Positions 12,068-57,346 are shown, counted from the stretch's first letter. The stretch is 64,000 nucleotides of DNA from Camelus dromedarius (GCF_036321535.1 NC_087445.1:46934001-46998000); one strand, 5' to 3'. Notes: generated by a model from the sequence alone, not told the origin. A program made the numbers and translations.

Positions 12068-12187
12068 GGGGACCCTTCTAGTCCCAGAAGCAATTTAAAG
12101 TTTGGAATGTAAAATGTGCACAGGGTGCAGGGGCCCAGCCTACCTGGGGGCTCCAGGGACCACATCCCCCCAACCCGTCACAATTAG
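12068..12187 (-). promoter_or_regulatory. OR37 promoter module upstream of locus 1
   Basis: GGGACCCTTCTAGTCCCAGAAGCAATTTAAAGTTTGG at 12068-12105 and CAATTAG at 12181-12187 (TAATTG on -). Homologous to five other copies. Confidence 0.75.
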
Positions 12188-12659
12188 AGACAGTGACAGG
12201 GACATGGCCAACTGGAGGCGGCGAGGGGAGCACAGCAGATGCTGGCCTCCTCCTGAGCCTTTCCTGGCATCTCAGAGAAGCCAGTGTTTGCTTCAGGGAC
12301 AGAGCACCTTGTCCCCAAGTTGAAAGACTAGACACCCAGAATGGAGAGGCAGGACAGATGTCTAACAGCAGCAGCCACTGCAGAATTAGCTGCATTCATT
12401 GAGGCTCCCCCGCGTGCTGGCCACCATGATAAGTGCTTCACACATATTATATAAGTTCAGTAAAATCCGGCAATACATATATATTGAGTGTCTACTTCCA
12501 GTCTTCCTGGGAGATCGTTTTACTATCCCCCTATTTTTTTTTTATTTGAGGGACCAAGCTTTAAAAAAATTAAGCAATTTACCAAAAACCACATGTCTTG
12601 TGAACAGCTGAGCAGGGATTTCAATCTCAGTACATCTAATTCTTTTTATCACCATTGAT

Positions 12660-12703
12660 ATCATCATCATCAGCAGCAGCAGCAGCAGCTGCAGCAGCAG
12701 CAT
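12660..12703 (+). repeat. Compound trinucleotide repeat (ATC)n(CAG)6 CTG (CAG)3
   Basis: Read directly. Confidence 0.9.
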
Positions 12704-12749
12704 CACTGTTATTTAATAGGTCTGGCTTGTACTTGGAACTAACTTCATA

Positions 12750-15520
12750 AGGTTTAGAAGGTATAATAAAATTAAACCTCTGTCTCTAGTCCCCCAGTTC
12801 GTCTCCCTCAAGGCAACCAATGTTAGCAATTTCTTGTCTGCTTTTTCTTCAGAGATATTCTATGCATTTGTTAAGCGAGAAAGTAAGATAGTAAGACAGT
12901 GTGCATTTGTGCTAAATTTGCCTCCAAAATAAATTTAGCACAAATACACTCTGTCTTGTCTTGCTTTTCTCAGTTAACAATATACCTTAGAGATATATAC
13001 CTGGGAAAAAATACATAGTACTGCGTCATTCTTTTCAATGTTTGCATATATTCCATTGTGAAGTTGTATCATCATTTAATTAACTAGTCTAATATTAATG
13101 GACACTTAGATTTTCAAAGCTTTTCCAATCTTATGCTATTACAATCAGTACTACAACAAACATACTTGCATATTAATAACTTAGTACATATAGTAAAATA
13201 TGGTTTAATGTACGTTTGTACTTTTGATAGATATTGCCAATTTACACATTCTTGTCATCGGTATGTGAGAATGTCTGTTTTCCCACGCTCTGTCAACATA
13301 ATATGTTGGTCTTAAGACTTTTTGGCCTTTGCCAAACTGAGTTGAGAAATGACATCTCATTGCAGTATTTAAAGTTTTGTGTTTAAAATAATTTAAAATG
13401 TGATATATAGCACACATATGTAAATGCATATCAAAATATATAAAACAAATTTTAAATCGAAAGAATAATAAAGTAATCACTACCTAATTTAAGGAGTAGA
13501 ACATTGCCAGCACCTGGGAACCTCCCTGAGTATTTTTCCCTACTCCTAGTCGTCTTTCTTTCCTTACAGAGATAATCACACTCCTGATTTTAGTTACAAT
13601 CGTTTCCATGCTTTTTTTGAATTTTATCATGTATGGATACATCCTTAAACAGTATAGTTTAGGTTTTCGTCTTTCTGAACTCTATAAAAATCAGATCACT
13701 TGAGGTTTTCTTTTTTTTTGTTTTTTCTTCATTCAATATTACGTTTGTAAGATTCATTGATATTTAGGAGTGTAGCTAAATTCATTAATTTCTTTTGCTG
13801 ACTTCCATTATATGACCATAGCACAGCTTATTTATACATTCTATTTTGATGAATAATTGGGTTGCTTCCCAACTGAATGCTGCTATAAGTATTTTATATG
13901 TTTTCCCTGGTACACACATGTATTCCCATTTGTCTTCATTGCATTTACAACCTGTCCTTTCTCCACCAATCTTCATTACCATCTCTGTCATATGTCAAGT
14001 CTCCAAACATAAATTGGTCTGTTGCTGAGATCTTTGTTCTTTTCCATTGGTATGTCTATTCCTGTGTCAATGCTACACTTCCCTAATAAATATTGCTTTA
14101 TTCTATGTTTTGATTTCTTATAGGGTAAATCCCTTTATTCCCACTCAATACTTTTTCAAATATGTCATGGCTGTTCTTGGTCTTTTGTTGTTTCATATAA
14201 ATTATTGAACCAGCTTATTAAATTTTACAATAATTATTTTAGAGATTAAAATATTGGGATTACATTGAATGTATAGATCAATTTGGGGAGAAGTAACATC
14301 TCTGTAATATTGAATATTCTTACCTATGAATGGGAAATATTTCTCTCTTTATTTTAATATCATTCAAAACACTTAATAATTTATAATTATATGCATAAAA
14401 GTCTTAGAGCTCTTTTGCTAGATTTACCTCTGTATGGTAGTATTTATTTTTTATTTCAATATATAAATATCTTTATTTATATTTCTTGGTGTCCTTAAAA
14501 ATGTTTCATATTTATTGCTAGAATATAGACATACAGTTGGGTTTTTGTATATTTATTTTATCTAGGGATCTTGCTAAACTCTCTTTTATATACTTATATC
14601 TCTAAATTATTTTAGATTCTGTACGTAGTAGGCATTTATGAATGATATTTATTTATGAATGATGACAGGTTTTTTCCTTTCTTCAAAAATTTTGATCTGT
14701 AGCCTATTTTTCTTGCCCTACCTCACTGGCTGGGACCACAGGTTCAGTACTGAAAGTTTTTATCATGAATGAGTGTTGTTTTCCCAAAGTTTCTTCTGCT
14801 TGACTTGATACAATCATGCGATTTTTTCCTATTTATTCTATTAATATGGTAGATTGCGTTGACTGATCTTTGAATATTAAACCAGCCTTGCATTCCTAGG
14901 AGGATAGTATCCTTCTTACTGCTGGGTGAAGAACAGGAGTTTCACTAGGGCTCTGTTGATTCCCTTCTGGCTGGCAGAGGCAGGAGTGCCTAGTATGACT
15001 CTCATGATCTCCATTGACACCATGGGAAGGGGTGGCTTCATAAGCATAGACACAAGTCCTGACTTTCCATTAGGCCCCCTTCTCTGATACCAGTCAAGTG
15101 GGAAGGAGAAGGAGCTTCCCACGTAGTCTCCACTGACAGTGTGGGGTGGGAACTTGTTACTCTTCCCAGGGGACATAAACATCCCACCTCCCTGCTCAGC
15201 CTCCTCTGATACCACACTGGCAGGGGAGTGGTTGGGCTGCCTTGTCATAGCCTGGCAAGGGTAGAAATCTAGGCCATCAGCTTAGTCTTTGCTGGTGGGG
15301 TGGGGCTGGGGCCATTGTTTTTTCTGATGTTTGGCTGGAGTAGAGTAGTTCTTGTCAGGACATTGAATTTTGTGAAACACTTTTTCTACATCTATTGAGA
15401 TGACCATTTGGTTTTTCTTCTTTAGTTTGTTAATGTGGTGAATTTTTAATGTTTAGCCTATCCATGCATTTTTGGAATAAATGTAACTTGCTCACAGGGA
15501 ATTATCCTCTAAGTCCATTA
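12750..15520 (-). mobile_element. Cluster of old L1 fragments (3'UTR, ORF2 and a 5'-type segment at ~14920-15355)
   Basis: Antisense L1 hallmarks such as GTAGATCAATTTGGGGAGAAGTAACATC, TTCCATTGTG...GGACACTTAG and AACCAGCCTTGCATTCCTAGGA. Confidence 0.7.
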
Positions 15521-15541
15521 CTATATTTGTTTTATTGATTT

Positions 15542-15667
15542 TGGGGGGGTGGAAAGGTAATTAGGTTTATTTATTTATATATTTATTTTTTAATGGAGGT
15601 ACTAGGAATTGAACCCAAGACTGTGCATGCTAAGCATATGCTCTACCACTGAGCTATACCTGCCTCC
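15542..15667 (-). mobile_element. tRNA-Ala-derived SINE (vic-1-like, camelid)
   Basis: On -: GTATAGCTCAGTGGTAGAGCATATGCTTAGCATGCACAG...GGTTCAATTCCTAGTACCTCCATTAAAAAATAAAT...AAACCTAATTACC. Flanked by TTGTTTTATTGATTT (15527-15541) and TTGTTTTACTGATTT (15670-15684). Confidence 0.88.
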
Positions 15668-15879
15668 AATTGTTTTACTGATTTTTATAATTTAGCATTT
15701 TGACATCAATGTTCATGGAGAGTACAGGTCTGAGAGGAATTTATTCCTTTTGTTTTATTTGAAAAAGAGTCTGGGATTTGAACAAGGCTGGTTTGTAGTT
15801 TCTTCTCTCTTAATTGGGAATGATCTCATGTAAAAAAATATAAAATTGCAGTTGGAGTACGCAGTGGTCAGCAAGTGAC

Positions 15880-20401: not shown

Positions 20402-21361
20402 TCACCAGGTGAAGTGTTTTTGAGTCAGCAGATTCCTCACAGCAGTCTTCCTGTCCTTGTTCCTGAGGCTGTAGATGATGGGGTTGAGCATGGGGGTTAC
20501 CATCCCATAAAAGAGGGAGGTGAGCTTGTCTGCAAGGCCTTGTTTGTCTACTCCCAGAGGGTCCCTGGATTTGGGCTTCCCATACATGAAGAGGATGGTC
20601 CCATAGAAGACGACCATGACTGTGAGGTGGGCAGAGCAGGTGGAGAAGGCCTTTTTCCTCCCCTCAGCTGAAGGGATCTTCAAAATGGTAGCAATGATGA
20701 ACACATAGGAGAAAGAGATGAGCAGCACAGGGACCCCCAAGAAAATCACATTGGCCACAACCATGCTGATCACATTGATGGAGATATCAGCACAAGCCAA
20801 CTTCAGGACAGCCAGGATCTCACAGGTGAAGTGGTTGATGATATTGTCCCCACAGAAGGGTAGTTGCATTGCTAGGGATGTCTGCACCATGGCAGTGGTG
20901 CTTCCAGCTGCCCAGGAGCCAGCAGCCATGGGCACGTAGGCAGCCTTGCTCATGACCCTAGGGTACCTCAGGGGGTTGCAGATGGCCACGTAGCGGTCAA
21001 ACACCATCATGCCCAGAAACACACACTCTGTGGCTCCCATGGCAAAGGAGAGGAACATCTGCATGACACAGCCCGAGAAGGAGATGGTTTTCCTGGGAGT
21101 AAGGAAGCTGTCAAGAATGAGGGGGACAGAGGAGGTCGTGTAGCAGATGTCGAGGAAGGAGAGGTTCCCCAGGAAGAAGTACATGGGCGTGTGCAGGCGG
21201 GAGTCAGACACGGTCACCAGGACGAGGACCCCGTTTCCCAGCAGGATCAGCAGGTACATCAGCAGGATGAGCACAAAGAACGTTTTCTCCAGCTTCAGGT
21301 GGGCTGAGAGGCCCAGGAGAATGAACCCCAGCATCGGGGAGGTCTGATTAGACCTGTCCAT
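20402..21361 (-). CDS. Olfactory receptor locus 2, OR13C7-like (OR37 subfamily), 319 aa, open frame
   Basis: Complete ORF from GCACCATGG (MDRSNQTS) to TGA, with seven TM segments and the extended ECL3 [19 protein letters not shown]. Carries atypical MVFDRY and RNKDRK. Confidence 0.9.
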
Positions 21362-22397
21362 GGTGCCTCTCCTCTGTAACTTGCAGGAATTCAAAAAGCC
21401 AACTTCATGATTTTCTGATGCCTAAAGTGGCCAGAAAGCCAGTGAGGAAACTCGTCCTGCCGAGCAGCTAGAGAACAGCTCTTGCAACCTGGGGGTCACT
21501 CTAAGTAAAATCTACTTTGTGATATTTGGCTGCCCGTAGAGGTATTTCAAAAACATGTCACCAGAGTGGACAGAATTTTTCTAATCATATTCAAGATTGA
21601 CATTACACATTTACTTCAAGTTATACCATGTGTGGCCAATTCATTTTAATCAATTTTGTGAGAAGTGTTATATTACATTTGTATGATTTTCCTGCCTTTA
21701 GGGTGTAAGACAGGTTGGAAATAACTGATCATTTTCATCCTCTATTCCTGACCATTCCCCTCTTCAAGCACTTTTGGATATTACCTTCCTCCTCTCACAC
21801 AGTTTTCTCTCCCCAGACCTCTGGGATATTCATTCCTTCTTTCCTTCATGCACCTGCCAGACTCCTCAGGTGCATTTACCCAAAGAACTGGCCTTTGCCA
21901 ACCACCCAGTGCCTGGCAATCATTAAGTTCCTTTCCCTCTCTGGGCCTCTGATTCCCTAATACTCACTCTGGAATGGATTTATTTTTAGAGGTATCCCAT
22001 CCCAGGGACCAAGTGACCTCAGGAATCTCTTGTTCTTGGGCTTTCTGTCACACCCCTGAGTTGTCCTTTTCCTTTTCCTTCAAGTTCCCTCCATGCCACT
22101 TAGTCACAAGGGTGAAGCCAGGAATGGGGCTGGGCCCACAAGAGTTTACATATTCTTTTAAAAGTGCTCTCTTACCTTTTTTTTTATAAATAGCTCAATA
22201 AGGAAAATCACTTTTCTGTGGTTTGGAAATAGTCCAGAGGCTGAAAATAGCCAATCTGGTCTGAAAGTAGCAGCCAGAGGAGTGAGCACCCGAAATGGGT
22301 GAAAGCTAAGTTTTCTTGTCTTTGTTCTGTGTTTCGGAAAAATCCACGAAGGCCCGTCCATTGCATATATGAAGCCATTTAAATGGCACCTTGCTAT

Positions 22398-22500
22398 TGG
22401 GATTATTCTAGTCCCTGAAGTAATTTAAAGTTGAGGCATTTAAGTGACAAAATTTAGAAACTTTATACATCTGAGATTATGTCCCCAAGATCCAATTATT
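22398..22500 (-). promoter_or_regulatory. OR37 promoter module upstream of locus 2
   Basis: GGGATTATTCTAGTCCCTGAAGTAATTTAAAGTT...GAAACTTTATAC...GTCCCCAAGATCCAATTA, ~1.0 kb 5' of the ATG. Confidence 0.8.
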
Positions 22501-23439
22501 CTGAAGTCCTCCAGAAATACTTTCTTCCCTCTCCCTCCCTTTGTACCCATCCTGCTGAGCTACTGGGAGGCATTAGAGAAGGGTCATTCTGGTCCTGCTG
22601 GAATTAACATAAACCCCTCAGTCAATAAGAACTCTTAGCAGAGCCCATAATAGATCTGGGAGAATGTGAACCCACTGCACAGGACAAATCCTTGTTAGCA
22701 GCCCCAGCATTTCCAAATTCAGGATCTCAGGGCTGGAAAGAAGCAAGTGACCTAGAAGGTTTTGTCTTGTCTGTCTCCCACCAAATAGATTCTGAGCACC
22801 TACCATAGGCCAGGCCTTCACAGGGCATTGGGAGAGTCATAAATGAATCTGGTCCTGGCTCCTGCCAAGAGTTTCACAGGTACAGCAGCCGTGGGCTTAA
22901 AAAAGGCTAGTTGATTGCAGAAGTGATGTCTTTTTGTTTGAAGACTTTCTTAGGTGTATGTGTTTTATCCTCTCCAGAGAATAAACTTTTTGTTGAGGTA
23001 GACAGGGGAGAGTTGACCGATGTCATATAATAAGGGAGGGGATGTAGGAACTTTGTTTATTATACATTTTTTCCTAATCCTCCTTATTTTAGCAGCACCT
23101 CTTTTCATTCCTGGTCTGAGGGACCTGGTACAGTGAGTCTTCTGTGCTGTAGGTCTGGTTGTGGCTGTCTTAGTTTCTGGCTTAGGATTTGACTCTATCA
23201 GATCTGCTATGGAAATGGCTACTAGTCCATTCACTTTCCAGCCTGCAGAACGTTATCACTCTGATGTCTCCTTTCTTCTCCTTAATCTTGTGATCTTGTC
23301 ATTAAAAACAAAAATTAAACAAAAAATATTACTGTAGTTTTTGTGGATTTCAGGAAGAGCAACATTAGATGCATGTGTTCAGTTCTCCTTAATGCCTCAG
23401 GCCTGATTCCATGCAGTTTCTAACAGCCGCTATTATTTT

Positions 23440-29293: not shown

Positions 29294-30253
29294 TCACCAG
29301 GTGAAGTGTTTCTCACTCACCAAGTTCCTCACAGCAGCCTTCACATCCTTGTTCCTGAGGCTGTAGATGATGGGGTTGAGCATGGGGGTCAACACCCCAT
29401 AGAAGAGGGAGATGAGCTTGTCTGCAAGGTCTTGTTTGTCTGCTCCCANNNNNNNNNNNNNNNNNNNNNNNNNNNNNNNNNNNNNNNNNNNNNNNNNNNN
29501 NNNNNNNNNNNNNNNNNNNNNNNNNNNNNNNNNNNNNNNNNNNNNNNNNNNNNNNNNNNNNNNNNNNNNNNNNNNNNNNNNNNNNNNNNNNNNNATGTAG
29601 GAGACCAAGATGAACAGCACAGGGACCCCCAGGAAGATCACATTGGTCACCCCCATACTGATCACATTGATAGAGATGTCAGCACATGCCAACTTCAGGA
29701 CAGCCAGGATCTCACAGGTGAAGTGGTTGATGACATTGTCCCCACAGAAGGGCAGCCTCATTGCAAGGGATGTTTGAACCATGGAGGCAGCACTTCCAGC
29801 TGCCCAGGAGCCAGCAGCCATGGGCACGTAGGCAGCCTTGCTCATGACNNNNNNNNNNNNNNNNNNNNNNNNNNNNNNNNNNNNNNNNNNNNNNNNNNNN
29901 NNNNNNNNNNNNNNNNNNNNNNNNNNNNNNNNNNNNNNNNNNNNNNNNNNNNNNNNNNNNNNNNNNNNNNNNNNNNNNNNNNNNNNNNNNNNNNNNNNNN
30001 NNNNNNGAATGAGGGGGACAGAGGAGGTCGTGTAGCAGATGTCGAGGAAGGAGAGGTTCCCCAGGAAGAAGTACATGGGCGTGTGCAGGCGGGAGTCAGA
30101 CACGGTCACCAGGACGAGGACCCCGTTTCCCAGCAGGATCAGCAGGTACGTCAGCAGGATGAGCACAAAGAACGTTTTCTCCAGCTTCAGGTGGGCTGAG
30201 AGGCCCAGGAGAATGAACTCTGTCACGGAAGCAGTCTGGTTGGCACTTTCCAT
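29294..30253 (-). CDS. Olfactory receptor locus 3, OR13C7-like (OR37 subfamily), 319 aa, 304 nt masked
   Basis: MESANQTAS...[11 protein letters not shown]...[20 protein letters not shown]. No disabling change in the visible part. N runs at 29449-29594 and 29849-30006. Confidence 0.8.
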
Positions 30254-31470: not shown

Positions 31471-32745
31471 TTTATTTTAATACCATTCTCCCTTGGCGAT
31501 CATGCAAAAATCCATGGACATTAATAGTCCTTGAGCCTTTTGTCACTAGACTCATATCGTACCATTGATTATGCTCCCCAAGTTACCTAGTCCAACCCTG
31601 TCTCCATTGTAGTTCTTTTTCTGCCCCACACTGATCCATGGCTTTTCAACTTCAGCTTGATTTCTTCTAAAGATAAAGAGTCTACTGCATTCCCAAACAG
31701 CCTACTTCATATTTGCAAACTCTAGAGTATTAGAAAATTCTTGAACATATTGAGCCAAGCAGTCGGTTTTCTAAGTTTTTTTTGTTCATGTGATGGTGGT
31801 CAGCTTCCTTCTGGAACTACACTGAATCTGCAGATACATCAGATATGTAAGCCCAGAGACTTGGGCTCCATTGTGCTTAACCTTCTGACCTGCTGAGTAG
31901 ATTTCAGTACTTCTTCCCTCTCCTAGACCCTCAGGTTACCTTATTCTGTGTTGGGATTGGAAGAGATCAATGATGTTCAAACTTCTTATGAAAGAGAACT
32001 TTTGTTCTCTTAAATTCAGAACCCCCATGTATAAAGCAGAGCTGCTCTTATTGAAGGGGACAGGGAGGGCTCAGAAACTCTGGGCTGCTCAGCCCGTGAG
32101 GCTCCTCTGAGGCCAGGTCGCAGGACCACAGGCTCCATTTTCATTGTAGGCCATAAAAATGTCACTCTCTGGAGCACAACAACAGGACAACACTAGCCAT
32201 TTCCATAGTTACGGTGTGAATGGTGCTCCCTGGAGTTGTACAAGAAGAGGCTCTGAAACCATGGAACCATCTCATCCTGGGAGTCTCTCTGAAATTAGGA
32301 GAATCCATGAAGTGAGACAGTTTCATAGGCTTCTTGCTTCTAGGTTTTTCTGACCCAGGAAGAAGGGGTTTTGCATGGCCCTGAATCTTTGTGATACCAC
32401 CGAAATTGTTTCATTTCTTCCCTTCTCCAGTCTCAACCCCTTTGAAAAATCAAATCATAAGCTGGAAATGTCACTGCACTAATAAAAATTTGAAGACTAC
32501 TCTTATGAGAACTCTCACCTACCTTTTTCAGGAACCTACTGAAAAAGGGTCCCTCTGTCTTGGAAATAGTACATGGGCCAGAAATAGCAATACTAGTTTA
32601 AAGGCCCGGGCTGAGATGTCCACCTCTGATTTGAAGAAGGAATGAAAGCCAGTGCCTCCCTCTCTATCTTGGTTCTGTGCTTTAGGCAAAATCTCCAAAG
32701 GAACAACCAGTACATGAAGAAGGCAATTTGAAATCAGCACTGCAA

Positions 32746-32848
32746 TTGGGACTACTGTATTCCCTGAAGTGATTAAAAGTTTGGAAATGGAATCATACAA
32801 ATCAGGAAACTTTATACTTTTGGGACAATGTCCCTGAGATCCAATTAT
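32746..32848 (-). promoter_or_regulatory. OR37 promoter module upstream of locus 3
   Basis: TTGGGACTACTGTATTCCCTGAAGTGATTAAAAGTTTGG...GAAACTTTATAC...GTCCCTGAGATCCAATTA, ~2.5 kb 5' of the ATG. Confidence 0.8.
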
Positions 32849-33395
32849 GCTGAAAGCACTCCAGGAAAATGTCTTTTTTTCCCCCTTCTTTTGTTCCTGA
32901 TGGAACACTTTCCATCAGATGGAGAGATGTTTCTACTCTTAGGCCACTGAAGGACATCGAGGAAGCATTTCCATGTCATGCTTGAATTTCCACAAACTTC
33001 AAAATGCTTAAACTTCTTGAGGAGAACAGCTGGGGAGATAAGACACCCTATGTTCATGGTATTGTGGAACCAGCAGCTGCAGGCACAATGCTTCTAAACC
33101 AAGTGCTCAAGGTCATGACTGTGGACACTTAGGGGAACTACCACCCAGAGCCATGGGGAGACTTCACGGAGGAGGCAGCTTCTGGCCAGGGACAATGAGG
33201 GAGAATTTTCACATAAAGAGACGGGCAAGGGTTGGGAGAAAGGGGAAGACCATCTTGGGGACAATACTTGGCACAGGTCTTAGGACTGAGTATTTCTTCC
33301 ACAGCCTCTACAAGTCATTTGTTTGAAAAGCATCATGGAACAGGAGACATAGAACAAAGTCCAGGGAAGACCTTCTAAGTTGGTGGAATCTGGAA

Positions 33396-38283: not shown

Positions 38284-38491
38284 NNNNNNNNNNNNNNNNN
38301 NNNNNNNNNNNNNNNNNNNNNNNNNNNNNNNNNNNNNNNNNNNNNNNNNNNNNNNNNNNNNNNNNNNNNNNNNNNNNNNNNNNNNNNNNNNNNNNNNNNN
38401 NNNNNNNNNNNNNNNNNNNNNNNNNNNNNNNNNNNNNNNNNNNNNNNNNNNNNNNNNNNNNNNNNNNNNNNNNNNNNNNNNNNNNNNNNNN
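38284..38491. other. Masked run (208 N)
   Basis: Lies between the U6 5' end and L1 ORF2 sequence. Confidence 0.95.
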
Positions 38492-39690
38492 AAGGCAATC
38501 CAATGGAGGAAAAGATAGTCTTTATATCAAATGGTACTGAAACAGGTGGATATTCGTATGTAATAATGATCGAGACCCTTACCTCATGCCATACAAAAAA
38601 ATTAACTCAAAACGGATCACAGATCTAAATGTAAAACCTAAAATCATACAACTTCTGGAAGAAAACATAGGGGGAAATCTTTGTGACCTTGGATTAAGTA
38701 AAGATTTCTTAAATAAGATACCAAATTTTAGATTATGATAAATTGTACTACAAAATTAAAAACTTTAATTTTCAAATGACACTGTAAGAGTGAAAAGACA
38801 AAAAAGAGTGAAAATATTTGCAAATTATATATGTGATAAAGGTCTTGTATCCAGGTTACATAAAGAACTCTTACATGTGACTCCATGATTAAAAAGACAG
38901 CCCAATTAAAATATCTACACCAAAAAGGTATGTCAATGGCTCAAAAGCACATGAAAAGATTCTCAATATTGGCATCCATCAGGAAGTGCAAATTAAAACT
39001 ACAGTGGCATACTACTGCACATCCACTAGAAAACTACATTGAAAAAGACTAATAAGAAAAGACTAATAACACCAAATGTTGGCGAAGATGTGCAGAAACT
39101 GAAGTATACATTGCTTCTGGGAATTTAAAATGATATAGCTTCTTTGGAAAAACAGTTTAGCAGTTTCTTAGAGCTGAGCACATTTGTACTATATGACCCA
39201 CCAATTCCACAGAAAGTTGAATACTAAATGTTCACAGCAACATTGGTCATAATAGCCAAAAACTGGGAGCAATCCAAATGTCCATCAATGGGTGAATAGA
39301 TAAACACACTGTGGTACAACCATACAATGGAATACTGTTCTGTAATAAAAAGGAACAGACTACTGATGCATTTTACAACTGGACAGGCCTCTAAAACATG
39401 CTAAGTAAAAAATGCCAGCCACAAAAGATTACGTATTGTATGGTTCCGTTCATCTGAAGTTTCTAGAAAAGGTAAATCCTTTTAGAAATAAACAAATTAG
39501 TAGTTACCTGCAGCTGGAGATTGAAAATGTGCATGAGAGGACTTTCTGAAATGATATGTAAATGTTCTAAAATTGATTTAGTGATAACTGCACAGCTGGA
39601 TTATATTTATCATAAATCATTGAGCTATACCTTACAATGGGTAAATTTTATGGTACGTAAGTTATACCTCAATAGAGTACTAAAAGTATT
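38492..39690 (+). mobile_element. L1 (L1MB/MC-type) ORF2 3' part and 3'UTR
   Basis: CCATACAAAAAAATTAACTCAAAA, CTTCTGGAAGAAAACATAGG, CCAAATGTCCATCAATGGGTGAA, TAAGTTATACCTCAATA. Confidence 0.85.
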
Positions 39691-39799
39691 TAATGAGACT
39701 TTCTCTGTCCACTAGTGGAAGCAACTCTCCTTTGGGAACTAGGACCCTAAGAGCTGAAAAGCCTAGAGCTGCAGAAATGCAAAATGCAAATTCTCAAGC

Positions 39800-42807: not shown

Positions 42808-43761
42808 TCACTGGGGAAAGCATTTCTGATTCATGAGATTCTTTACAGCAGCCTTCACATCCTTGTTTCTGAGGCTGTAGATGATGGGGTTAAGCATGGG
42901 AGTCAGCACCCCATAGAAGAGGGAAGTGAGCTTGTCTGAAACAGCCTGTTTGTCTGCCCCTAGGGGGTCCTTTGATTTGGGCTTTGCATACATGAAAAGA
43001 ATAGTCCCATAGAAGATGACCATCACAGTAAGATGTGCAGAGCAGGTAGAGGCCTTTTTCCTCCCCTCAGCTGAGGGGATCCTCAGGATGGTGGTGAGGA
43101 TGAAGATGTAGGAGACCAAGATGAACAGCACGGGGACCCCCAGAAAGATCACATTGGCCACCCCCATACTGATCACATTGGTGGAGATGTCAGCACAGGC
43201 CAACGTCAGGACAGCCAGGATCTCACAGGTGAAGTGGTTGATGACGTGGTCCCCACAGAAGGGTAACTGTACTGCAAGAGAGATCTGTACCAAGGAGTTG
43301 ACTCCACCAGCCAGCCAGGAGCCGGCAGCCATGGGCACGTAGGCAGCCTTGCTCATGACCACGGGGTACCTCAGGGGGTTGCAGATGGCCACATAGCGGT
43401 CAAACGCCATCATGCCCAGAAGCACACACTCCGTGGCTCCCATGGCAAAGGAGAGGAACATCTGCACAGCACAGCCTGAGAAGGAGATGGTTTTCCTGGG
43501 TGTGAGGAAGCCATCCAGGACCAGAGGGACCGAGGAGGTTGTATAGCAGATGTCGAGGAAGGAGAGGTTCCCCAGGAAGAAGTACATGGGCGTGTGCAGG
43601 CGGGAGTCGGACACGGTCACCAGGACGAGGACCCCATTGCCCAGCAGGATCGTCAGGTACATCAGCAGGATGAGCACAAAGAATGTTTTCTCCAGCCTTG
43701 GGTGGTCTGGCAGCCCCAGCAAGACAAAGCCTGCCACAACAGACTGGTTAGCCACTTCTAT
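42808..43761 (-). pseudogene. Olfactory receptor locus 4, OR13C7-like; start codon lost (ATA) and F deleted from KAFSTC
   Basis: ATA GAA GTG GCT AAC CAG aligns with locus 5 ATG GAA GTA TCC AAC CAG. The ORF track starts it at GTG 43755. GRKKASTC replaces GRKKAFSTC. Confidence 0.8.
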
Positions 43762-46144
43762 TTTAAATTCTCTCTTTCACCCTAAGGAAAACTGAGGACA
43801 GCAAACACATATTTATAGGGATCACTTTGTGAGGATTACAATGAGATGCTTCTGGAACTTATAATTAAATTTACCCTTTGACATGCTAACTTGTAATATC
43901 AGCATCTAAGGGATAAAATTCACTGTCCACTGAAGTTACCTTAAAAGTCAGAATATATCAAATCAAAAGCAGGAAAAGCAGACACCAGAAATCAGATCAA
44001 ACCACGATTTATAATAGAATTTAGCCAGATCAGTAATGTTAATGCACTTGATGGAAGAGATGTGTAAGGATGGGTCTATGGGAACCATAAAAGAGGAACC
44101 GTGAGGGTGTGCTGCCTGGGTCCACCACTGACTGGCCCCCTGGCCAGCCCTGCCTGTCCCCAAATTGACCCTGCAGTGTCCTTGGAGGCTTTGGGCTGTC
44201 ATACTCAGTGATGCTGAGCGTTGACACCAGCTCACTCACTCCCCTGGCTCTAATTCTGTGCTGTATAATAATTTTCTAATGATAATTTGGCCCCACCTGG
44301 AGTCGTACATGGAGAGAATATGATGAGCAGAGGCCAGGAAGATTAGATTCTGCCTAGCATTTACATTTGTTACTTGATGCCTGGTTTATACTTCATTTCT
44401 TGTGAGTTTGGTCAGCGATCCTCCTTCGCTGCCCTGTCAATAAAGAGTTTCTGGCCAATAGACCCTACAGACCCTAACAGTCCACATCCCCTCTCTCTAA
44501 CCATGGCCTTTGTCCATAGCACTGCAGTTTCCTCAGTCTGCTCCAGCCTGTGGGGCTGGGGAGCAGGGATAGAATCCATGGACAAGTGTCCCCCGTGCCT
44601 CCCAGTATGAGCATCTATAACTTTTGGACCAAGCTCCATGCTTTGGGAGCTGTTTTGTAAGTCACAGCTCCTAACTCAGACCCTTTTATATTTGAGTTGA
44701 CCATTAAAGTCACTGCAATGCCACAGTACTCCTTTCTCCCCTACAAAAAAAAAAAAAAAAAAAAAGACAATTCTACCCAGCCTTGCAGAGAGTTGCTCAA
44801 AGGAGGGATGGACGTGGGATGTACTTCAGTCACTGTGGAACAGTACATGAGTCTTCAATTCTCATATTAAGGATGAAAGGAAAGCTCAGAGAGGTCCCCA
44901 GGCAGCGAGGATAGGGCGAGGACGGAGCCTGCTTCCTCATCTTCTCCCTGGGGCTCCTTCCCTCACCACTCTGATTGTAATTTTGCTCCTCCATTTGTGC
45001 CAGAGCAGATCTACTGAGGAGCAAAGGACTGATTATGAAGTCTTAGTCATCCACGTTTTCCCTAGGACACTCATGAAAAATAGAAGTGTCACACTTTTCT
45101 CCAAGAGATTGCCTTGTTGTAGGGCTTGGATGAGTGGGGATGTCCCTGGGCTTCACTCATTGTATCCATGATTATAACACTGGTGCTGGTTGGGGGAATT
45201 TGGGTGGGAGAAACCGGGAGGAGTCTGAGGGTATCCTCATGCAATAATCAGAGGCAATTAACTGTAGGTGCTGAGAATATATGTTATTAGAGATATTAGT
45301 ACTGTTGACTAGAGAACCTTAGACTTGGCAGGAATGCTGTAAAATAACTAGTCTTGCCTCTTTCACCTCCATTCTGTGAGCACCTTCTGTGAAACAGTTT
45401 TCCCATTGCTACTTTGAATGCCTTGAGTTATGTGCGTGCAAGACTCCCATCCTTTGTCCAACAGTCTGGATTGTTGGAAAGCTTTCCCTTACATTGAGCA
45501 GAAACTTCATTTTTCCAATGTCACCCCTACTCCTAACCACCCCCCACCCCCACCCCGACACTGGTCTAGACTTCCAGGCCATGCCTGCTCCCTTCCCCTA
45601 TAAAAGTCCTTCAGAAACATGGAAACTGTGACCAGGCCCCCACTCGCCAACCATCTTTTCTCGGCTCCCCACGTACCTGAGGAAAGTTTGGCCACAGAGA
45701 GATCTTGGTCTGTGTCCAGTGTGGGGATAAGGCCGTGGTGGGGACGGGAGCTGACCTGGGAAGAATGTCTCATGGCAGGACTGCTCAAACCGTCCACCTT
45801 GACTATCCCCTGTCTAGCCCTACCTGTCGAGGCTGTGCCTGGAAGCATGCAGTAAATTCTGCTTAGCTGTCTTGGAGCTGAGCAGTCTCTTCAGATTTCA
45901 CAGCAAGGTAAAAAAAAATGTAGGGTTGGCCATAGCTGAAGGGGCTCTACTGCTCCTTTTCCTGGCCTTCTCCATGCCCAGCGAGTTAACAGGAGGGAAG
46001 ACCACTCAGGGAGCTGCCTCCCGGGGGTCCTGCAGTCCTGCTCAGCCTGTGCGCCCAGGGCAGACACCTTCTGCTCTTCGCCCCTTGCCCTCTCGCCAGA
46101 GGTTCTGTCAAAGAGCCATGGAGCAATTTAGAGCTCTGCTTGTT

Positions 46145-46231
46145 TGGGGCCAGTTTTAATCCCAGAAGCAATTTAAAGTTTGGTGGAGGCCTCTCAGGAG
46201 TTTAGGGCCTGTGTCCCATAAACCCAATTAG
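46145..46231 (-). promoter_or_regulatory. OR37 promoter module upstream of locus 4
   Basis: TGGGGCCAGTTTTAATCCCAGAAGCAATTTAAAGTTTGG...CCCATAAACCCAATTAG, ~2.4 kb 5' of the lost start. Confidence 0.8.
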
Positions 46232-47569
46232 GTAAGTTTAGACAGCTCCATGTAAATCTTAACTCGCTACCAAGAACTGTTCCTTAGATTAGAAAGTTTC
46301 TGTCCTGTCCTTGCCGACTTTCCTGGGAGTAGAGGAGGTAACTGAGGTCTGACTGCTTTGACCACAGTGGTGTCTGTGAGAGGGGGCTCTGCACTTGTCT
46401 TTCCAAGGCTAAGTGGTAAAACAAGAGGTGGAAGGCTTGCCTTGGCCCTGACCGACACACTGGCTGTCTCCATGCTCCAGAGCAGCTGGCCCTCCCTGCA
46501 GTCAGCCCCTCAGCATCGTCCAGAGCTGACCAGGTATGGCACTTGCCCTCAAAAACAGGAAGCAAGAGACATGTACCAAGGGCCAGTGCCGAGCACTTGA
46601 AAGAGAGCAGAAATGACAAGGATGGGGCCTCTGATCTCTAGGTAGATTCTGGTGACAGCTGCAGTCTGCAAGATGATTGCCAAATGCCCCTGAGGTGTAC
46701 GGGAGCCCAGAAGCAGGGCAGAGTCAGAGGAGGGAGGGTGGAGCAGATTGGATCCCAACTGGGAAGTAACTGACAGACACACAGAACAAAGATGACAGCT
46801 TGAAGCAGAGGGCCTGAGGGCAGAAGAGAGCTCTGGTGTTGGTAAGACAGCGGCAGGGTCATGCCTTAGACAGAGGCAGCTCTAGAGTCACAGGCCAGGC
46901 AGGTAGCTAGCATCTGGTTAGCTGGAGATCTTTGGTGGTGAGGAACAGAGAATCTTTGAAGTAATCTCAGCTGGGGCCAGGGAGGTGAGAGTCAGGTAGG
47001 ATGGAACATGGCTACAGGCACTCAGCAGGGCCTCAGGATGGGGAGTTTCTCTTAGAAGTAGATCAGGGGGAAGGCTGAGAGGGGGTGAGGAGCTCTGGAT
47101 CGAAGCCTAATCTGTATCAGAAGCAACTGATAAAGCCTGGTCTTCAAGAGAAGTAGGATGACTTGCTAATAAAAAGACCTGGGTACTAATTCTTCCTTGG
47201 GAGGAAGAAAATGGGAGTTGTTAGAGTTCTCTGTGTACCCTTGTCATCCGTGCAGACGCCATGGTCCACTTTACCGCAGGTGAAATGCACAGAGTTCTCA
47301 TAGAGTGTGGGTTCAGCCCCCTCCCCCGGTGCTTTTGTCATTTTCATAAAGACTGAGGAAAAGAAGCCCTGTAAATACAAATGAAGATCCATATATGGAA
47401 GTGAGAAGTAAAGGGATTTATTTTAGCAAGTCATTTTTAGGGGTTGGCTTTTTTCTTTGAACAAAAGGAATTTGCAGAGTTCCTTTTCTTGGGAGTCAGG
47501 GTTCAAGAAACACCTGAGAAGGACACTCTGAGAACACACACCGGGTTCATGCATCAATACTGAGACTGG

Positions 47570-48011: not shown

Positions 48012-48018
48012 ACTCTTA

Positions 48019-48190: not shown

Positions 48191-48286
48191 AAACTCAATT
48201 TCCCCCTCACCTGGCATTACTTTTTATTGAGATTCTCAAGTGAGGGTCATCAGAGTGTGGATCATATCATGGGACATATCCCACCA

Positions 48287-49243
48287 TCACTGGGTGAGGC
48301 GTTTCTGAACCACCAGTTTTCTCACAGCAGCCTTAACATCCTTGTTTCTCAGACTATAGATGATAGGGTTGAGCATGGGGGTCAGAAGTCCATAGAAGAG
48401 GGAGATAAGTTTGTCTAAAACATCCTGTTTGTCTGCCCCTAAGGGATCTTTGGATTTGGGCTTCCCATACATGAAGAGGATGGTCCCATAGAAAATGACC
48501 ACCACAGTCAGGTGAGCAGAGCAGGTGGAGAAGGCCTTTTTCCTCCCCTCAGCTGAGGGGATCCTCAGGATGGTGGTGAGGATGAAGATGTAGGAGACCA
48601 AGATGAACAGCACAGGGATCCCCAGAAAGATCACATTGGCCACACTCATACTGATCACATTGGTGGAGATGTCAGCACATGCCAACGTCAGGACAGCCAG
48701 GATCTCACAGGTGAAGTGGTTGATGACGTGGTCCCCACAGAAGGGTAACTGTACTGCAAGAGAGATCTGTACCAAGGAGTTGACTCCACCAGCCAGCCAG
48801 GAGCCGGCAGCCATGGGCACGTAGGCAGCCTTGCTCATGACCACGGGGTACCTCAGGGGGTTGCAGATGGCCACATAGCGGTCAAACGCCATCATGCCCA
48901 GAAGCACACACTCCGTGGCTCCCATGGCAAAGGAGAGGAACATCTGCACAGCACAGCCTGAGAAGGAGATGGTTTTCCTGGGTGTGAGGAAGCCATCCAG
49001 GACCAGAGGGACCGAGGAGGTTGTATAGCAGATGTCGAGGAAGGAGAGGTTCCCCAGGAAGAAGTACATGGGCGTGTGCAGGCAGGAGTCGGACACGGTC
49101 ACCAGGACGAGGACCCCGTTGCCCAGCAGGATCGTCAGGTACATCAGCAGGATGAGCACAAAGAATGTTTTCTCCAGCCTTGGGTGGTCTGAGAGGCCAA
49201 ACAAGACAAATTCTGTCACAGCAGACTGGTTGGATACTTCCAT
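48287..49243 (-). CDS. Olfactory receptor locus 5, OR13C7-like (OR37 subfamily), 318 aa, intact
   Basis: Fully sequenced ORF with all canonical motifs (NQS glycosite, [41 protein letters not shown]) and ECL3 [19 protein letters not shown]. Confidence 0.93.
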
Positions 49244-52432: not shown

Positions 52433-53577
52433 ACCTCTTGTAACGTGAGGAAACTGAGGTCAGGAGGGAGGTTGGTGAATTTCATGTGACTCTGAAGAAG
52501 GGTGCTTTTCTCTAACTGGTAGTGATACAGTCTCCGAAAGAGGTTATCTCAGGGTATCAGGAATTAAGGGATGCAGAATCATTTTTACAGAAAGGCTCCT
52601 TTAGTCTCAGGGAGTGCAGGATTTGAAGCTTGGGAGAATCTTCAGATATTAAATCAATCCAGTCCCCTCCTCTGACCCACCTGTTAACAGCTGTCCCGTC
52701 TTCAGGAAGTGATTTCTCGGGTTCTTCTTGAACATTTTGAACAATGGTGAGAGGGGGCTTACAGCCTCCAATGTTGTTGTCAGGAAGCCTGGGCTGTTAG
52801 ACTTCTCCACGGACCTGCTATGTGCCCTTTTCTAACTTCTCCCTTCCTCCACTGGTCCGAAGTCAGCCTCCTGGACTCATGCAAAACAGACCCACACCCT
52901 TGCCACAGCAGCAGCCTTTGGAGCTTTAGAAATAGTTGCCTTGTCCCCCAGCCCTGTCCTCCTCCCAGCCCCCAGTCTGCTCAGCCCTCTTTGCATTAGA
53001 CTGTTCTTTCCTCCCACTGGTGAAGAACCAGCCAGAGAGCTCATCCAGCACTTAGCCAGTATGGGGTCCCATCTAGGCTCAGTCTGTTGCTTGCGAGGAG
53101 GCAGGCCAGAAGTGGCTGTTTCTGGTGTCACCTGCCCATCTGGCTGCTACTGAGCCGTAACCAAGCAGGCTGGCCACACAGGCCATATCCCTCATAGCTG
53201 CTCTGGCAATGCCTAGGTGCACGCTCTTAACACAGCCACATGCCCTTCATCTGTTGTTTAACTTCCTGGTGTCTCTTAATGGCCCTGGGTGTAGAGGGCT
53301 CCCAGGTGCAGCCACACACAGCTTGCAGCTCACAGAAGCTACAGTTACCCACAGTGCCCTTGCCTGCCCCTGGGGCTCAGTGAGACAGGGAGAGGAAGGC
53401 TGACCCTTAAGGCTGAGGCTTAACCAGGTGCCCCAGGCAGGAGGAGGAGGCTGCACCACAGGGCAGACTGGAAAGCCGTGCCCAGCCCCTGGGCCCAGGA
53501 CCCTCTTCTCTGTGCTCCACCCTGCTCTCCAGGGGGTCCCACAATCAGTCTCTCAGGAATTTAGGGCTGGGTTGCTT

Positions 53578-53660
53578 TGGGACCAGGCCCTATTCCAGAA
53601 GCAATTTAAACTTCGGTGAGAGGCTCAGAATTTAAACTTCACCTCATAGACCCAATTAGG
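53578..53660 (-). promoter_or_regulatory. OR37 promoter module upstream of locus 5
   Basis: TGGGACCAGGCCCTATTCCAGAAGCAATTTAAACTTC...AATTTAAACTTC...CATAGACCCAATTAGG. Confidence 0.8.
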
Positions 53661-55199
53661 CATGTTGTGTTGTCTACCCAAAGTGCCCCTCTCACTACAG
53701 GAATATCTTAGCTTAGAACATTCTCTGGCCAAGTAATCAGAGTTCTCCTGGGCTTTAATTGCAACAGTTGGTCCAAGGTGGCTCTGTCATTGGCCCCCAA
53801 AGAGCCTAGAAAAGAGAAAGACTTGGGCCTCAGTGATTCAGATATTCCTGGGAACTTCGGACCAGATTCCTGGCCACCCAGGTATCTCCTCCCCTCCACT
53901 GGGTGACCCAGGATGCTGTCTGTCTCTCTTTCTCTCTCTCTCTCTGCCACCAGCCTGCCCTCCACTCTGAACAGTCTCCATGCTGCAAACATGTCATGTG
54001 TGTCAGACCTTGTGACCAGTACCAAAGAGTAGGGGTTGGAGGGGGGGCCATGATGACCAGAAATGGGTCTTGGTATTTGGAGAACGTCCAGCAGAGTGGG
54101 ACTCTCCGGAGACTAAGGCATAACTGAGTGTGTCACAGAGCTGTCTGGGGAGCTGGGCATAGGAGGAGCGTGCAGAACTAGCCCAGGATGAAAATAATGG
54201 AGATGAGGAGCAAGTGGCCCTGGGAGACATTAAGGAGGAAGAAATTATAGGATATGAGAGAGACCTGGGATGGGAGATGAAGGGGAGAGGAGAATTACCA
54301 ATGGCTGGAATCCCAGATCTTGAGACCTGGAAGAAAGACCTGGAGGAAGTGAGGAAGAGAACCTGTCTGGGCTGGTGTGGGGAGGGGGCTGCAAGGTCAT
54401 CTCTGACATTTCAGTGCATGGTTTCTGTACGTCTTCGTGCTCAGCTCCAGGCTGGTTACTGGAAATAAAGATAAGACTAAGAAATAGTTTCTGTGATTGA
54501 GGAGTTTATGGCCAGTTGAATTTGTTGTATTTGAGATAATGGTGAGATATTAATAGGAATCAGGGTTGCCCCTTATTTAGAACTGTTTTCTAAATCTTAT
54601 CCAGTGCTCCCCCCAGACCCCATGAGCTAGGTATGAGGGGTACTTGGATGTGAGCAGGTGGAGGGACCCTCCTTCGTTAAACTCTAGTGACTCATATTCG
54701 TGATACCTGGTATCTTTGACCTCTGTCCTCTAAGTGCCAGGACCTTCCCCTCCTTCACACTTGGATTTCCTCAGGAGTTAGGGAGTGTTGTGAGGTTCAC
54801 AGGGGACAGTGGCACCATCAGGCCTGACAGAATATCAGTGTTTTGAGCAGGAATCTGGTTGCTGACCTCATGAATTCTGAGAGGTATCGCGTGCACATTT
54901 GTCCTCAGAAAGCCACAATAAATAGATGCCTCCCCAGGAAATGCTGGGGTGGCTGGGGTGGCTGGGGTTCAGATTGTCCCTTTGGTCCATTTATCTTTGG
55001 CAAACTCATATTACACACATACACTCACATTTGCAGAAAGGAGATTTCTGTCACACAACGCTTCATCTTGGCCAATTAAAACCCAGTATCCCCTTGGCTA
55101 GTCTGTCCGAGGCTCCCCTAGACAATGAGGAGAAACTGTACCTCAAATCTTAATGCCCCGAGATGCCACACAGTGTTAGTAAGAAGTCTAGCCCTGTGC

Positions 55200-55415
55200 T
55201 CCTTAATGTGACCGACAGAGGGCAGTGTCACTATCGCCTGGGAGCCTGTTAATGATGCAGATTCCTAGGCCCCTCCCTGGACCTACTAAATCAGTCTCTG
55301 GGAGTGGGGTCCAGCAATCTGCCTGTGCACGCATGAGCGTGTGTGTGTGCTCATGTGTTTTAAAAAGTTCTGTAGATGTTTCTGATGCATGCTCATGTCT
55401 GAGAAGTACTGGTTT
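55200..55415. mobile_element. MER5A/B
   Basis: GCCTGGGAGCCTGTTAATGATGCAGATTCCTAGGCCCC...GACCTACTAAATCAG...TGAGAAGTACTG. Confidence 0.7.
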
Positions 55416-55879
55416 ATCTGGACTTTTCCGAGGATTAGGGTCCCACTTACTCCTTTTAAGGAATCTAAGAGGAGGGAGGGTGTTTTTATGAAGGATCAAG
55501 GCAGCCGCCTATAATTCCTCTGCTCTGGAGTCAACTGCTCTTTCAGTCCTTGCTTATCCCTAACTCTTGACCCTTGACCCTTGACTGTCCACACCTCTAG
55601 TGACCTCCTCTGGGTCATTGGTCTCTGGGGCCTTTCTCTCTCTTCTGCCTGCAGGGAATCTCTGTCCTGTCCTTAGAATCCACTTTCTCAGAGAGTTCTC
55701 ACAACAGAGCAGAGGGCCCTTAGTGGCCCAGAGGTCAAGGAAACCCTGTAGATATGAATTTGGATTTCAGGGAGCCTCCAACAGTGTACAGTGGTGGTAC
55801 AGTTAGAGTTGTACCTGCAGACAGCAGAGCAGTGCCTGCATCTCCAGGGTTCCAGCTACTCTTCCTAAGTGATGGATAA

Positions 55880-56580
55880 GTCAGTGAGTCCCCAGTTCAG
55901 ACATCTCCCCCATCTCCACCTGGATGTTCCTCAGACACCCTGTTCTCCAAAATGAATTCATCTTTTCTCCCCAAACCGGCAACTTGGTCAATATTCTCTA
56001 CCTTGGTGGTGTTGTCATCATCCCCCATAGCTGAGTTAGAAATATTGACTCTACACTCTTTCCTGCCTGCTGTATCCAACCAAACTCTAATATTGTATTT
56101 CATATCTACCAAACATTTCTTGAATCTCCCTATCTTCACCCTTCAATTACTTCCCAGTTAATATTCTTATCTTCATTTTCCTGAAGTGTCTCTCTGTCTC
56201 TTTAGAACTTGTCCTTCTGCTCCCAGTCTTCCTTCCACACTGTGCCCAGAAGAATCAATCTAAGATGCAAATTTAATCATGTCAGACCTTTACTTAAAAT
56301 CCCTAAGTGCCTCCTCATTGTCTATGGAAGAAAGTCCTAACTCCTCAGAATGCCCCAGAAGACCCACTAGGGTCCAGCCCTGCCTTCATCCCTGTCAGCA
56401 GCCCCTGTCTTTGTGCTCCAGCAACACTGCGCTGCTGGTCACTCCCCACTCCTAAGTCTCTTTCTCATTTCTATGCCTTGGTTTATGTAGCCCCTTCAGC
56501 CTGGGGTAATTCCCCACTCCACTTTGTCGGGGAAATCATCATTCCTCCATTCCAGTGATGTGCTAGTGAATGTTTCATGA
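55880..56580 (+). mobile_element. L2 fragment
   Basis: CTCCACCTGGATGTTCC...TGCAAATTTAATCATGTC...CTTAAAATCCCT...TTCAGCCTGG...AATGTTTCATG. Confidence 0.65.
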
Positions 56581-57242
56581 CCAGATCACCAGGTCAGAAA
56601 AAGCCCTGATCTGGAGCATTTGCTTATTTCTGTGGTGTAAACCCTCCCAGGATGGCCCATTTCAAGCTATCAGCGAAGTCACTGAATGGGAGTTGGGGGA
56701 TGTGCACATTGTCGAGCCAGCTCCAGCACGCAGGCACCTTCTGTCACCTTTTCCGGGAGGTCTGGCCCCTGCCTGCCTCTGAGCTGTCACAGCAGCGTGG
56801 GCATTCTCCCTGGCCTACATGTCTTTCCTTATTCTGTAATTTTCTTTTGCGTTCCTATTTCTTGCCATTGGACCGTGGTTCTCAGCACATTTCTGCCTTC
56901 TATGCAGTACACGCTCGGTAATTGTTTCCTGATAGAAGGAAGGTACCCATCCTCTGGACCCGTCCCTTTTGTGGGTCACATTCTGTCCATAATTCTAGAG
57001 GGAGAATATAAGTCTTTCACTTAGACCCCCAAAACTACTGCATAAGCACAGACTTGGGGTGATGGGGCTTGTCTGCAGCACAGGAAAAAAGACTTGGGGG
57101 TCTGAATGAGTCATGTAATCACTGACCAGCAGGCTGTTGGACTCTGCTAATGGAATTATGATGATCAGAGAGAAAGGAAGGAGGAGGGGTGTGAGGGAAG
57201 GAGAAAGGAAGCAGGCAGTAAACTTCCTCCAGTGCTTTTGAC

Positions 57243-57346
57243 ATAATTGGATCTTGGGGATGTTATCCCAGAAGGATACAAAATTTCTAAACTGAGTACA
57301 ACTCACTTTCCAAACTTTAAATGACTTCAGGGACTAAAATGGTCCC
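57243..57346 (+). promoter_or_regulatory. OR37 promoter module upstream of locus 6 (inverted with its gene)
   Basis: ATAATTGGATCTTGGGGA...CAAACTTTAAATGACTTCAGGGACTAAAATGGTCCC is the reverse complement of the 22398-22500 type. ~2.7 kb 5' of the ATG. Confidence 0.82.

Follow-up and report, generated by a model that had tools for sequence, protein, structure and literature searches.

The dromedary (Camelus dromedarius) DNA analyzed here, GCF_036321535.1 NC_087445.1:46934001-46998000, is a stretch of 64 kb that we refer to as the window. It contains six tandem odorant receptor (OR) genes, and upstream of each gene lies one copy of a short conserved module, which is the subject of this analysis. 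The coding sequences (CDS) are located at 6962-7933 (gene 1, OR13C7-like), 20402-21361 (gene 2, intact, 319 aa), 29294-30253 (gene 3), 42808-43755 (gene 4) and 48287-49243 (gene 5, intact, 318 aa) on the minus strand, and at 60010-60968 (gene 6) on the plus strand. The genes matched Pfam 7tm_4, and among the best 120 database matches their relatives were OR13C7, 13C7-like or 2S2-like proteins with 83-93% identity. In an alignment with consOR2 and consOR5, gene 5 displayed a surplus of six residues in the third extracellular loop (ECL3), between TM6 and TM7. Six extra residues in this loop are the hallmark of the OR37 subfamily, whose receptors are known from mouse to mark neurons that occupy a central patch of the epithelium. 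Judged by their sequences, the six window genes are OR13C7-like members of the OR37 subfamily, cluster I.

The six upstream modules

The six module copies, designated m1 through m6 after the genes to which they belong, were present in alignments of all six at the positions where the initial annotation had placed them: 12068-12187, 22398-22500, 32746-32848, 46145-46231 and 53578-53660 on the minus strand and 57243-57346 on the plus strand. As had been claimed, there is one module for each OR upstream of the start codon, at module-to-ATG distances of 1.0-4.4 kb, and the module is always on the strand of its gene, the inverted gene 6 included. A pattern-free self-blastn of the window likewise bore out the claim that the intergenic DNA holds no comparable similarity, coding sequences and a few interspersed repeats apart. 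In this comparison m2 and m3 matched each other over 22319-22547 and 32667-32897 (72%), and m2, m3 and m6 were mutually alignable over 160-240 bp with 70-74% identity. A second pair, m4 and m5, matched over 200 bp (46039-46238 and 53479-53666, 67%), and the similarity of m1 to m4 and m6 was restricted to 38-55 bp. Two dispersed repeat pairs in the window, 2465-2867/51848-52256 and 731-1077/24547-24959, are 69-79% identical and unrelated to the modules.

The core of the module is the 21-mer AACTTTAAATTGCTTCTGGGA, which matched five modules with three or fewer mismatches, compared to 0.00 matches expected (none in 100 shuffles); the core of m3 differs from this consensus at four positions. An nhmmer profile built from the six copies identified exactly six places in the window. 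One additional match to the 21-mer, with three mismatches at 39102-39122 on the plus strand, was considered as a seventh module and rejected as a chance occurrence, since it lies inside the 3' end of an L1 element and has no other feature of the module.

Some dimensions of the module required revision. The gap between TAATTG and the core was measured at 39-78 bp instead of the 55-95 bp initially given. The stretch first delimited does belong to the module, but its end was set too early, as the block reaches ~60-90 bp further towards the gene. This extension includes a second (T/C)TAAAT box ~50 nt past the first, followed by a CCTYTGGAGA block. The fixed GGGA-N9-TCCC spacing reported for four copies is exact in m1, m2, m3 and m6; m4 has GCCC in place of TCCC, and m5 reads GGAA-N10-TCCC. 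Among mammalian copies, GGGA-N9-(T/G)CCC was found in 14 of 17, the remaining three having a spacing of N8 or N10; the spacing is therefore conserved among mammals and may, as first suggested, be a feature of this subfamily.

The most diverged copy is m1 (12040-12187), which has a long branch (0.62), a GC-rich insertion that sets TAATTG apart from the core, and no composite-like site, and which keeps both a perfect 21-mer core and GGGA-N9-TCCC. Two everted half-site sub-blocks can be recognized in each module, GGGA-N5-(T/G)CCC after TAATTG in most copies and GGGA-N9-(T/G)CCC after the TTTAAAT core, as illustrated by 22440-22498 and 22396-22432 in m2. These paired sub-blocks could represent an ancient internal duplication or the target of a dyad-binding factor.

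Two of the genes carry lesions. In gene 4 the ancestral ATG has become ATA (start region 43755-43770) and one residue is deleted, at KKA-STCS in the protein; on these grounds gene 4 is probably a pseudogene. In gene 6 a 1-nt deletion relative to gene 2, near 60511, causes a frameshift that splits the open reading frame into 60010-60567 and 60570-60968. The module of gene 6 is undamaged, and the frameshift could reflect either a real pseudogene or an error in the draft assembly.

The assembly contains runs of N at 2293-2464, 7363-7603, 29449-29594, 29849-30006 and 38284-38491. Three of these fall in coding sequences, one in gene 1 (7363-7603) and two in gene 3, and two are intergenic, with 38284-38491 lying between genes 3 and 4. 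The runs in genes 1 and 3 have exactly the spacing predicted from the paralogues (242, 149 and 158 nt between flanking alignments), a pattern more in keeping with masking, or with gaps sized from a reference, than with gaps whose size was unknown. Provided that these length estimates are correct, the reading frames of genes 1 and 3 would be continuous. All runs lie clear of the modules and of the DNA that connects each module to the start codon of its gene; the promoter finding presented below is independent of the assembly gaps.

Conservation across placental mammals

Loci of 20 kb around OR13C7-type genes were obtained by exact-protein look-up from rat (L006), cow (L007), elephant (L009), tamandua (L011), leopard (L012), galago (L013) and mouse (L015); a further locus, from another camel assembly (L010) in which one gene encodes a protein 100% identical to that of gene 5, was taken for gene positions only. 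Together with the 64-kb window, these ~150 kb from eight genomes gave a search space of ~210 kb. The camel profile produced 13 matches in the orthologous loci, with E values of 1e-25 to 1e-37. Twelve of them precede an OR37 CDS by 1.0-5.0 kb and share its strand (two each in cow, leopard, galago and the other camel assembly, and one each in rat, elephant, tamandua and mouse). The thirteenth also comes from cow, as the third copy there; it is close to the edge of the locus on the opposite strand, and its gene is outside the locus. A fourteenth, truncated match (E 1.4e-11) is found at the end of the other camel locus. Beyond these 14, no profile match was detected in the ~150 kb of orthologous loci. 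Furthermore, one module is present upstream of every OR37 CDS in the rat, mouse, cow, elephant, tamandua, leopard and galago loci. The initial annotation had recognized that an interspersed repeat would speak against its proposal; within the ~210 kb examined, the profile was found only upstream of OR37 genes, so the module is not a dispersed repeat there.

Camel m1 and m4 have exactly the same core 21-mer as two copies from cow and as the elephant, tamandua and galago copies, and the core is thus unchanged across four placental superorders. The modules also fall into orthology groups that cross species boundaries: m4 with cow, elephant and galago; m5 with cow and tamandua; m2 with leopard and rat; m3 with leopard and galago; and m6 with cow and mouse Olfr155. 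These groups indicate that the paralogous promoters predate the placental radiation and that each has been retained since.

In slow-evolving lineages much of the intergenic DNA can be aligned to camel with 68-78% identity, and in each of the four orthologue groups tested the module stands out as a local maximum of conservation (0.83-0.92), reaching 0.92 for m2, 0.90 for m3 and 0.89 for both m4 and m5. When rat and camel are compared at gene 2, the only alignable sequences are the CDS and the module with ~240 bp downstream of it (22526-22165; 366 bp, 73%), and this alignment stops at the exon 1 donor. Metagenome contigs were also searched for orthologues, and a first pattern gave no match; five microbial matches to a second pattern were rejected as chance, since they are without TAATTG and show no further similarity. 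In the rat locus, a partial OR37-type coding fragment (L006 16331-16753) lies downstream of Olr836 and has no module of its own within the locus.

The coding sequences show a different pattern of relationship. Within two clades the CDS tree is arranged by species, joining camel genes 4 and 5, camel genes 2 and 6, the two leopard genes, and rat with mouse. In contrast, the module tree retains the cross-species orthology groups. Genes 4 and 5 share an identical tract of 403 bp (43199-43601 and 48681-49083), which suggests that gene conversion has been at work and was restricted to the coding regions. As read from these trees and this tract, the coding sequences undergo concerted evolution, and the promoters retain an orthology specific to each paralogue.

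Mouse start site, factor sites and predicted first exons

The mouse locus (L015, GRCm39 chr4:43844311-43865270) contains a gene that is 318/319 identical to the GenBank protein named Olfactory receptor 155. An extra mouse protein considered as Olfr156 proved instead to be a variant of Olfr155, and it is not recorded as the product of a gene. The mouse module, at L015 7080-7258, is the orthologue of m6. For Olfr155, the supplements of Monahan 2017 (PMC5608512) list a promoter window at chr4:43851264-43851564, an Lhx2 ChIP-seq peak classed as 'Lhx2_only_OR' at chr4:43851199-43851615, and a distance of 27374 bp to the element Makronisos, which implies the same start site. With mm10 and GRCm39 coordinates equated, the promoter window corresponds to L015 6955-7254, the Lhx2 peak to L015 6889-7305 and the start site to L015 7255. 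Relative to this start, TAATTG is positioned 159 nt upstream, the beginning of the core 89 nt upstream, the second TTTAAAT box 40 nt upstream and the splice donor 176 nt downstream. The Lhx2 peak has its center at 43851407, on the TAATTG of the mouse module (43851406), and it is unlikely that so exact a fit of coordinates would arise by chance. Start sites mapping far from the modules had been named as evidence that would count against a promoter; the annotated mouse start is instead close to the module, 89 nt past the start of the core. In the comparison with mouse upstream DNA that had been recommended, the Olfr155 copy is the sequence orthologue of m6 and lies inside the published promoter window.

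The factor sites assigned in the initial annotation fared unequally. Its reading of TAATTG as an Lhx2 site holds, since the mouse peak is centered on this motif; TAATTG or TAATTA is present in 16/17 copies, and the homeodomain assignment is well supported. The O/E (Ebf) sites that it named are weaker, with three mismatches to TCCCNNGGGA. The best recurrent O/E candidate is TCCCAARGMA at ~+30, which has 1-2 mismatches in five copies. In mouse, the Olfr155 and Olfr156 promoters were classed as having an Lhx2 motif only, Olfr157 alone being classed as Ebf+Lhx2 (Monahan 2017, PMC5608512).

The arrangement TAATTG-N7-GGGA occurs in m2, m3, m4 and m6, in the same register as the validated Sfaktiria probe, TAATTG-ATCTCCA-AGGA. 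A stricter form, TAATTR-R-N6-RGGA, was found four times in the window, all within modules, compared to 0.36 expected. The degenerate composite pattern (PMC11643329) is fitted by m4 and m5 at 17/17 positions and by m2, m3 and m6 at 16/17, and m1 has four mismatches to it. This degenerate pattern was discarded as stand-alone evidence, since at 1.4 per kb in the window it is too common.

Camel start sites were predicted by carrying the mouse start site over through the 17-copy alignment. Mapped in this way, the modules as first noted represent about -160 to -55 of the promoters. Promoter m1 would cover 12004-12187 on the minus strand, with TAATTG at 12186-12181, the core at 12102-12082, GGGA-N9-TCCC and a predicted start at ~12004. 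The predicted non-coding exon 1 of gene 1 is located at 11847-12003 (-) and ends at a weak donor, GAG/GTAAAG, with GT at 11846. For gene 2, promoter m2 (22343-22526, -) contains TAATTG at 22498-22493, the core at 22432-22412 and the second TTTAAAT box, with a predicted start at ~22343. Its predicted non-coding exon 1 (22176-22342, -) ends at the donor AAG/GTAAGA (GT 22175), which is kept in leopard and rat, and the acceptor of the predicted intron precedes the ATG (21361) by 12 nt. Promoter m3 (32692-32867, -) has TAATTG at 32847-32842, the core at 32781-32761 and a predicted start at ~32692, and is followed by the predicted non-coding exon 1 of gene 3 (32523-32691, -) with the donor AAG/GTAGGT, GT at 32522; the leopard and galago orthologues of m3 have AAG/GTAAGT at the same offset.

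Promoter m4 (46093-46258, -) has TAATTG at 46230-46225, the core at 46180-46160, GGGA-N9-GCCC and a predicted start at ~46093. Promoter m5 (53526-53688, -) has TAATTG at 53658-53653, the core at 53613-53593, GGAA-N10-TCCC and a predicted start at ~53526. On the plus strand, promoter m6 (57217-57403) contains TAATTG at 57244-57249, the core at 57313-57333 and the second TTTAAAT box, with a predicted start at ~57403. The predicted non-coding exon 1 of gene 6 (57403-57573, +) ends at the donor AAG/GTAAGC, GT at 57574, and the predicted acceptor of its intron is again 12 nt ahead of the ATG (60010). Mouse Olfr155 has AAG/GTAAGT at an offset equal to that of the gene 6 donor.

Taken across species, m2, m3 and m6 have a strong donor, AAG/GTAAG, 254-265 nt past the start of the core, and so do mouse and the orthologues of these modules in cow, leopard and galago. 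The outliers are rat, at +240, and m1, with its weaker GAG/GTAAAG at +256. A pyrimidine-rich tract and an AG lie just before each ATG, the AG being 12 nt before the ATG in genes 1, 2, 3 and 6. A spliced NCBI model of gene 4 in the other camel assembly (348 aa) was considered as evidence for exon 1 and rejected, as its 5' end lies 320 nt beyond the predicted start site. This model has an upstream coding exon and uses the mutated ATA with the next G as its acceptor, and so looks like a rescue of a pseudogene by annotation; the corresponding sequences in the window are 43755-43770 and 45677-45773.

Probable promoter function and known systems

The initial annotation proposed that the six modules are the six promoters, and with this the mouse promoter window, the start site and the conserved donor and acceptor agree. 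We conclude that each module is very probably the proximal promoter of its own OR37-family gene. Camel start sites and factor binding would, we infer, be the same as those in mouse. In the proposed layout, a homeodomain site, TAATTG, would be positioned at about -160, with a GGGA half-site 7 nt further on in five of the six copies. The core, AACTTTAAAT-KR-CTTCWGGGA, would occupy about -90 to -70, followed by (T/G)CCC at about -60, a second TATA-like (T/C)TAAAT box at about -40, and the CCTYTGGAGA block at the start site. Lhx2 would bind TAATTG, and Ebf/O-E proteins would probably act on the weak half-sites. Transcription would start ~40 nt past the second box and yield a non-coding exon 1 of ~170 nt, with its donor ~257 nt past the core and an acceptor 12 nt before the ATG, a structure that is clear for genes 1, 2, 3 and 6. 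Splicing would then remove an intron of 0.8-4 kb. With the start site and the first exon inside it, the module would flip together with gene 6.

Several observations weigh against this conclusion. The O/E sites are half-sites only, with the full consensus in no copy, and m1 is without the second TAAAT box. The base aligned to the mouse start does not form a canonical initiator, and the mouse start itself derives from gene models and may be some bases off. The equality of mm10 and GRCm39 coordinates in this region was deduced from the fit and involved no lift-over. Genes 4 and 6 seem disabled while their modules are still intact, and the exon 1 donor of genes 4 and 5 is ambiguous, with inconsistently conserved candidates at +357, +425 and +504. 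Finally, the RNA runs that were found included no olfactory library and covered only the whole 2.4-kb stretch with its introns, most likely as DNA carry-over.

The modules might instead be enhancers of the Greek Island type, intergenic elements to which Lhx2 and Ebf bind and which exert their effect on the cluster without being sites of initiation themselves. One such island, Makronisos (chr4:43823778-43824191), is part of the same mouse OR cluster at distance 0 from Olfr156, whose promoter window it overlaps, and is co-bound by Lhx2 and Ebf (PMC5608512). Additionally, the TAATTG-N7-GGGA register of m2, m3, m4 and m6 is that of the Sfaktiria composite site, and the Olfr155 promoter window has a composite motif score of 9.53, which is high for an OR promoter and below the stringent cut-off of 10 (PMC5608512). 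However, the block itself contains the annotated mouse start site, a splice donor is conserved at a fixed distance from it, and there is a single copy per gene, always in the orientation of the gene. Moreover, Makronisos itself overlaps an OR promoter window, with a composite score of only 1.02 and no Ebf motif called (PMC5608512). Greek Islands are defined as intergenic and away from OR start sites, whereas the block described here holds the start site, annotated in mouse and predicted in camel, and has the predicted exon 1 next to it. We therefore regard distal enhancers of this type as an improbable account of the modules.

It is still less probable that the modules are neutral, functionless leftovers of the duplication unit. 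The modules did duplicate with the genes, and the module and CDS trees each have two major clades, which correspond. In contrast, no similarity can be detected any longer in the remaining intergenic DNA of the paralogous units, and the 21-mer core has remained identical in four mammalian superorders. The confinement of the rat-camel alignment to the block and the CDS, combined with the conservation peaks within regions that are otherwise alignable, excludes a neutral relic for practical purposes. Finally, an interspersed repeat fragment placed near these genes by chance, an idea to which the short length of the module and the one near-match of the 21-mer in L1 lend themselves, is scarcely credible given that the profile, run over 64 kb plus ~150 kb from eight genomes, gave matches nowhere but upstream of OR37 genes, that the L1 match has nothing else of the module and that orthologous copies occupy orthologous positions.

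With the modules taken as proximal promoters, their resemblances to Greek Islands allow, and do not establish, that OR37 promoters are enhancer-like. More specifically, OR37 promoters might form an unusual, enhancer-like class of OR promoters that act on each other in cis and underlie the patch-restricted choice of these receptors. We put this forward tentatively and consider it rather unlikely as a whole. It is prompted by the TAATTG-N7-GGGA juxtaposition of Lhx2 and Ebf half-sites, conserved for ~100 million years, by Lhx2 occupancy in bulk mouse neurons (the Olfr155 peak, and Olfr156 as Makronisos), which is unlike most OR promoters, and by the persistence of promoter identity across mammals beside coding sequences homogenized by conversion.

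The present analysis provides a sequence-level annotation of the promoter, predicted start and first exon for six OR37 genes of a non-model mammal, and places the OR37 promoter among the most deeply conserved OR promoters known. By itself it raises no new question, as the blocks, their homeodomain and O/E-like sites and the part that they play in patch expression had been established in mouse by work from 2000 to 2007. The present analysis adds the orthology of the promoters, paralogue by paralogue, over seven mammals, and its contrast with the converted coding sequences. Of some interest too is that the block coincides with published Lhx2 occupancy and that the promoter of one mouse paralogue is a named Greek Island.

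The initial annotation correctly noted that conserved promoter blocks had already been described for the mouse OR37/mOR262 genes. Hoppe et al. in 2000, 2003 and 2006, and Zhang, Breer and Strotmann in 2007, reportedly found conserved motif blocks directly upstream of the mOR37/mOR262 start sites. These blocks are said to contain homeodomain and O/E-like sites and to be bound by interacting factors, and the promoter fragments used by Zhang et al. in 2007 were reportedly sufficient for clustered (patch) expression in mouse transgenes. Like the camel modules, the mouse mOR37/mOR262 blocks are reportedly shared among paralogues and contain a homeodomain site; they are also reported to lie just upstream of the start, to contain O/E-like sites and to be followed by a non-coding exon, to which a predicted start, half-sites and a predicted first exon would correspond in camel. 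The camel cluster has six genes where mouse OR37 cluster I has five, and the likeness to the published blocks is one of description, not of letters. The mouse promoter papers (Hoppe 2000, Genomics 66:284; Hoppe 2003, Genome Res 13:2674; Hoppe 2006, Genomics 87:711; Zhang 2007, Mol Cell Neurosci 36:95) appear in the reference lists of PMC3247239, PMC3247230 and PMC4721658.

For OR promoters in general, O/E and homeodomain motifs are enriched upstream of the start sites and a TATA-like box is found at -60 to -10 (Young 2011, PMC3247239). Such generic promoters (Young 2011, PMC3247239; Michaloski 2006; Vassalli 2002; Rothman 2005) resemble those of camel OR37 in being AT-rich without a CpG island and in having homeodomain and O/E-like sites within ~200 bp, a TATA-like box, a 5' non-coding exon and an intron ending before the ATG, the last two as predicted for camel. 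They differ in that generic promoters share motifs and no alignable sequence, whereas ~100-230 bp can be aligned among camel OR37 paralogues that predate the placental radiation. The invariant OR37 21-mer, for its part, matches no listed OR motif.

Greek Islands (PMC5608512, PMC11643329) have in common with the camel modules the succession of TAATTG, 1 nt and a 10-mer ending in GGGA, in the Sfaktiria register, and with mouse OR37 an Lhx2-bound promoter at Olfr155 and a promoter listed as an island at Olfr156. In contrast to these islands, the camel block is at the predicted start site and not in distant intergenic DNA, and the 5' half of its Ebf 10-mer is poor. Taken together, these comparisons lead to the conclusion that the camel modules are new members of a known promoter family.

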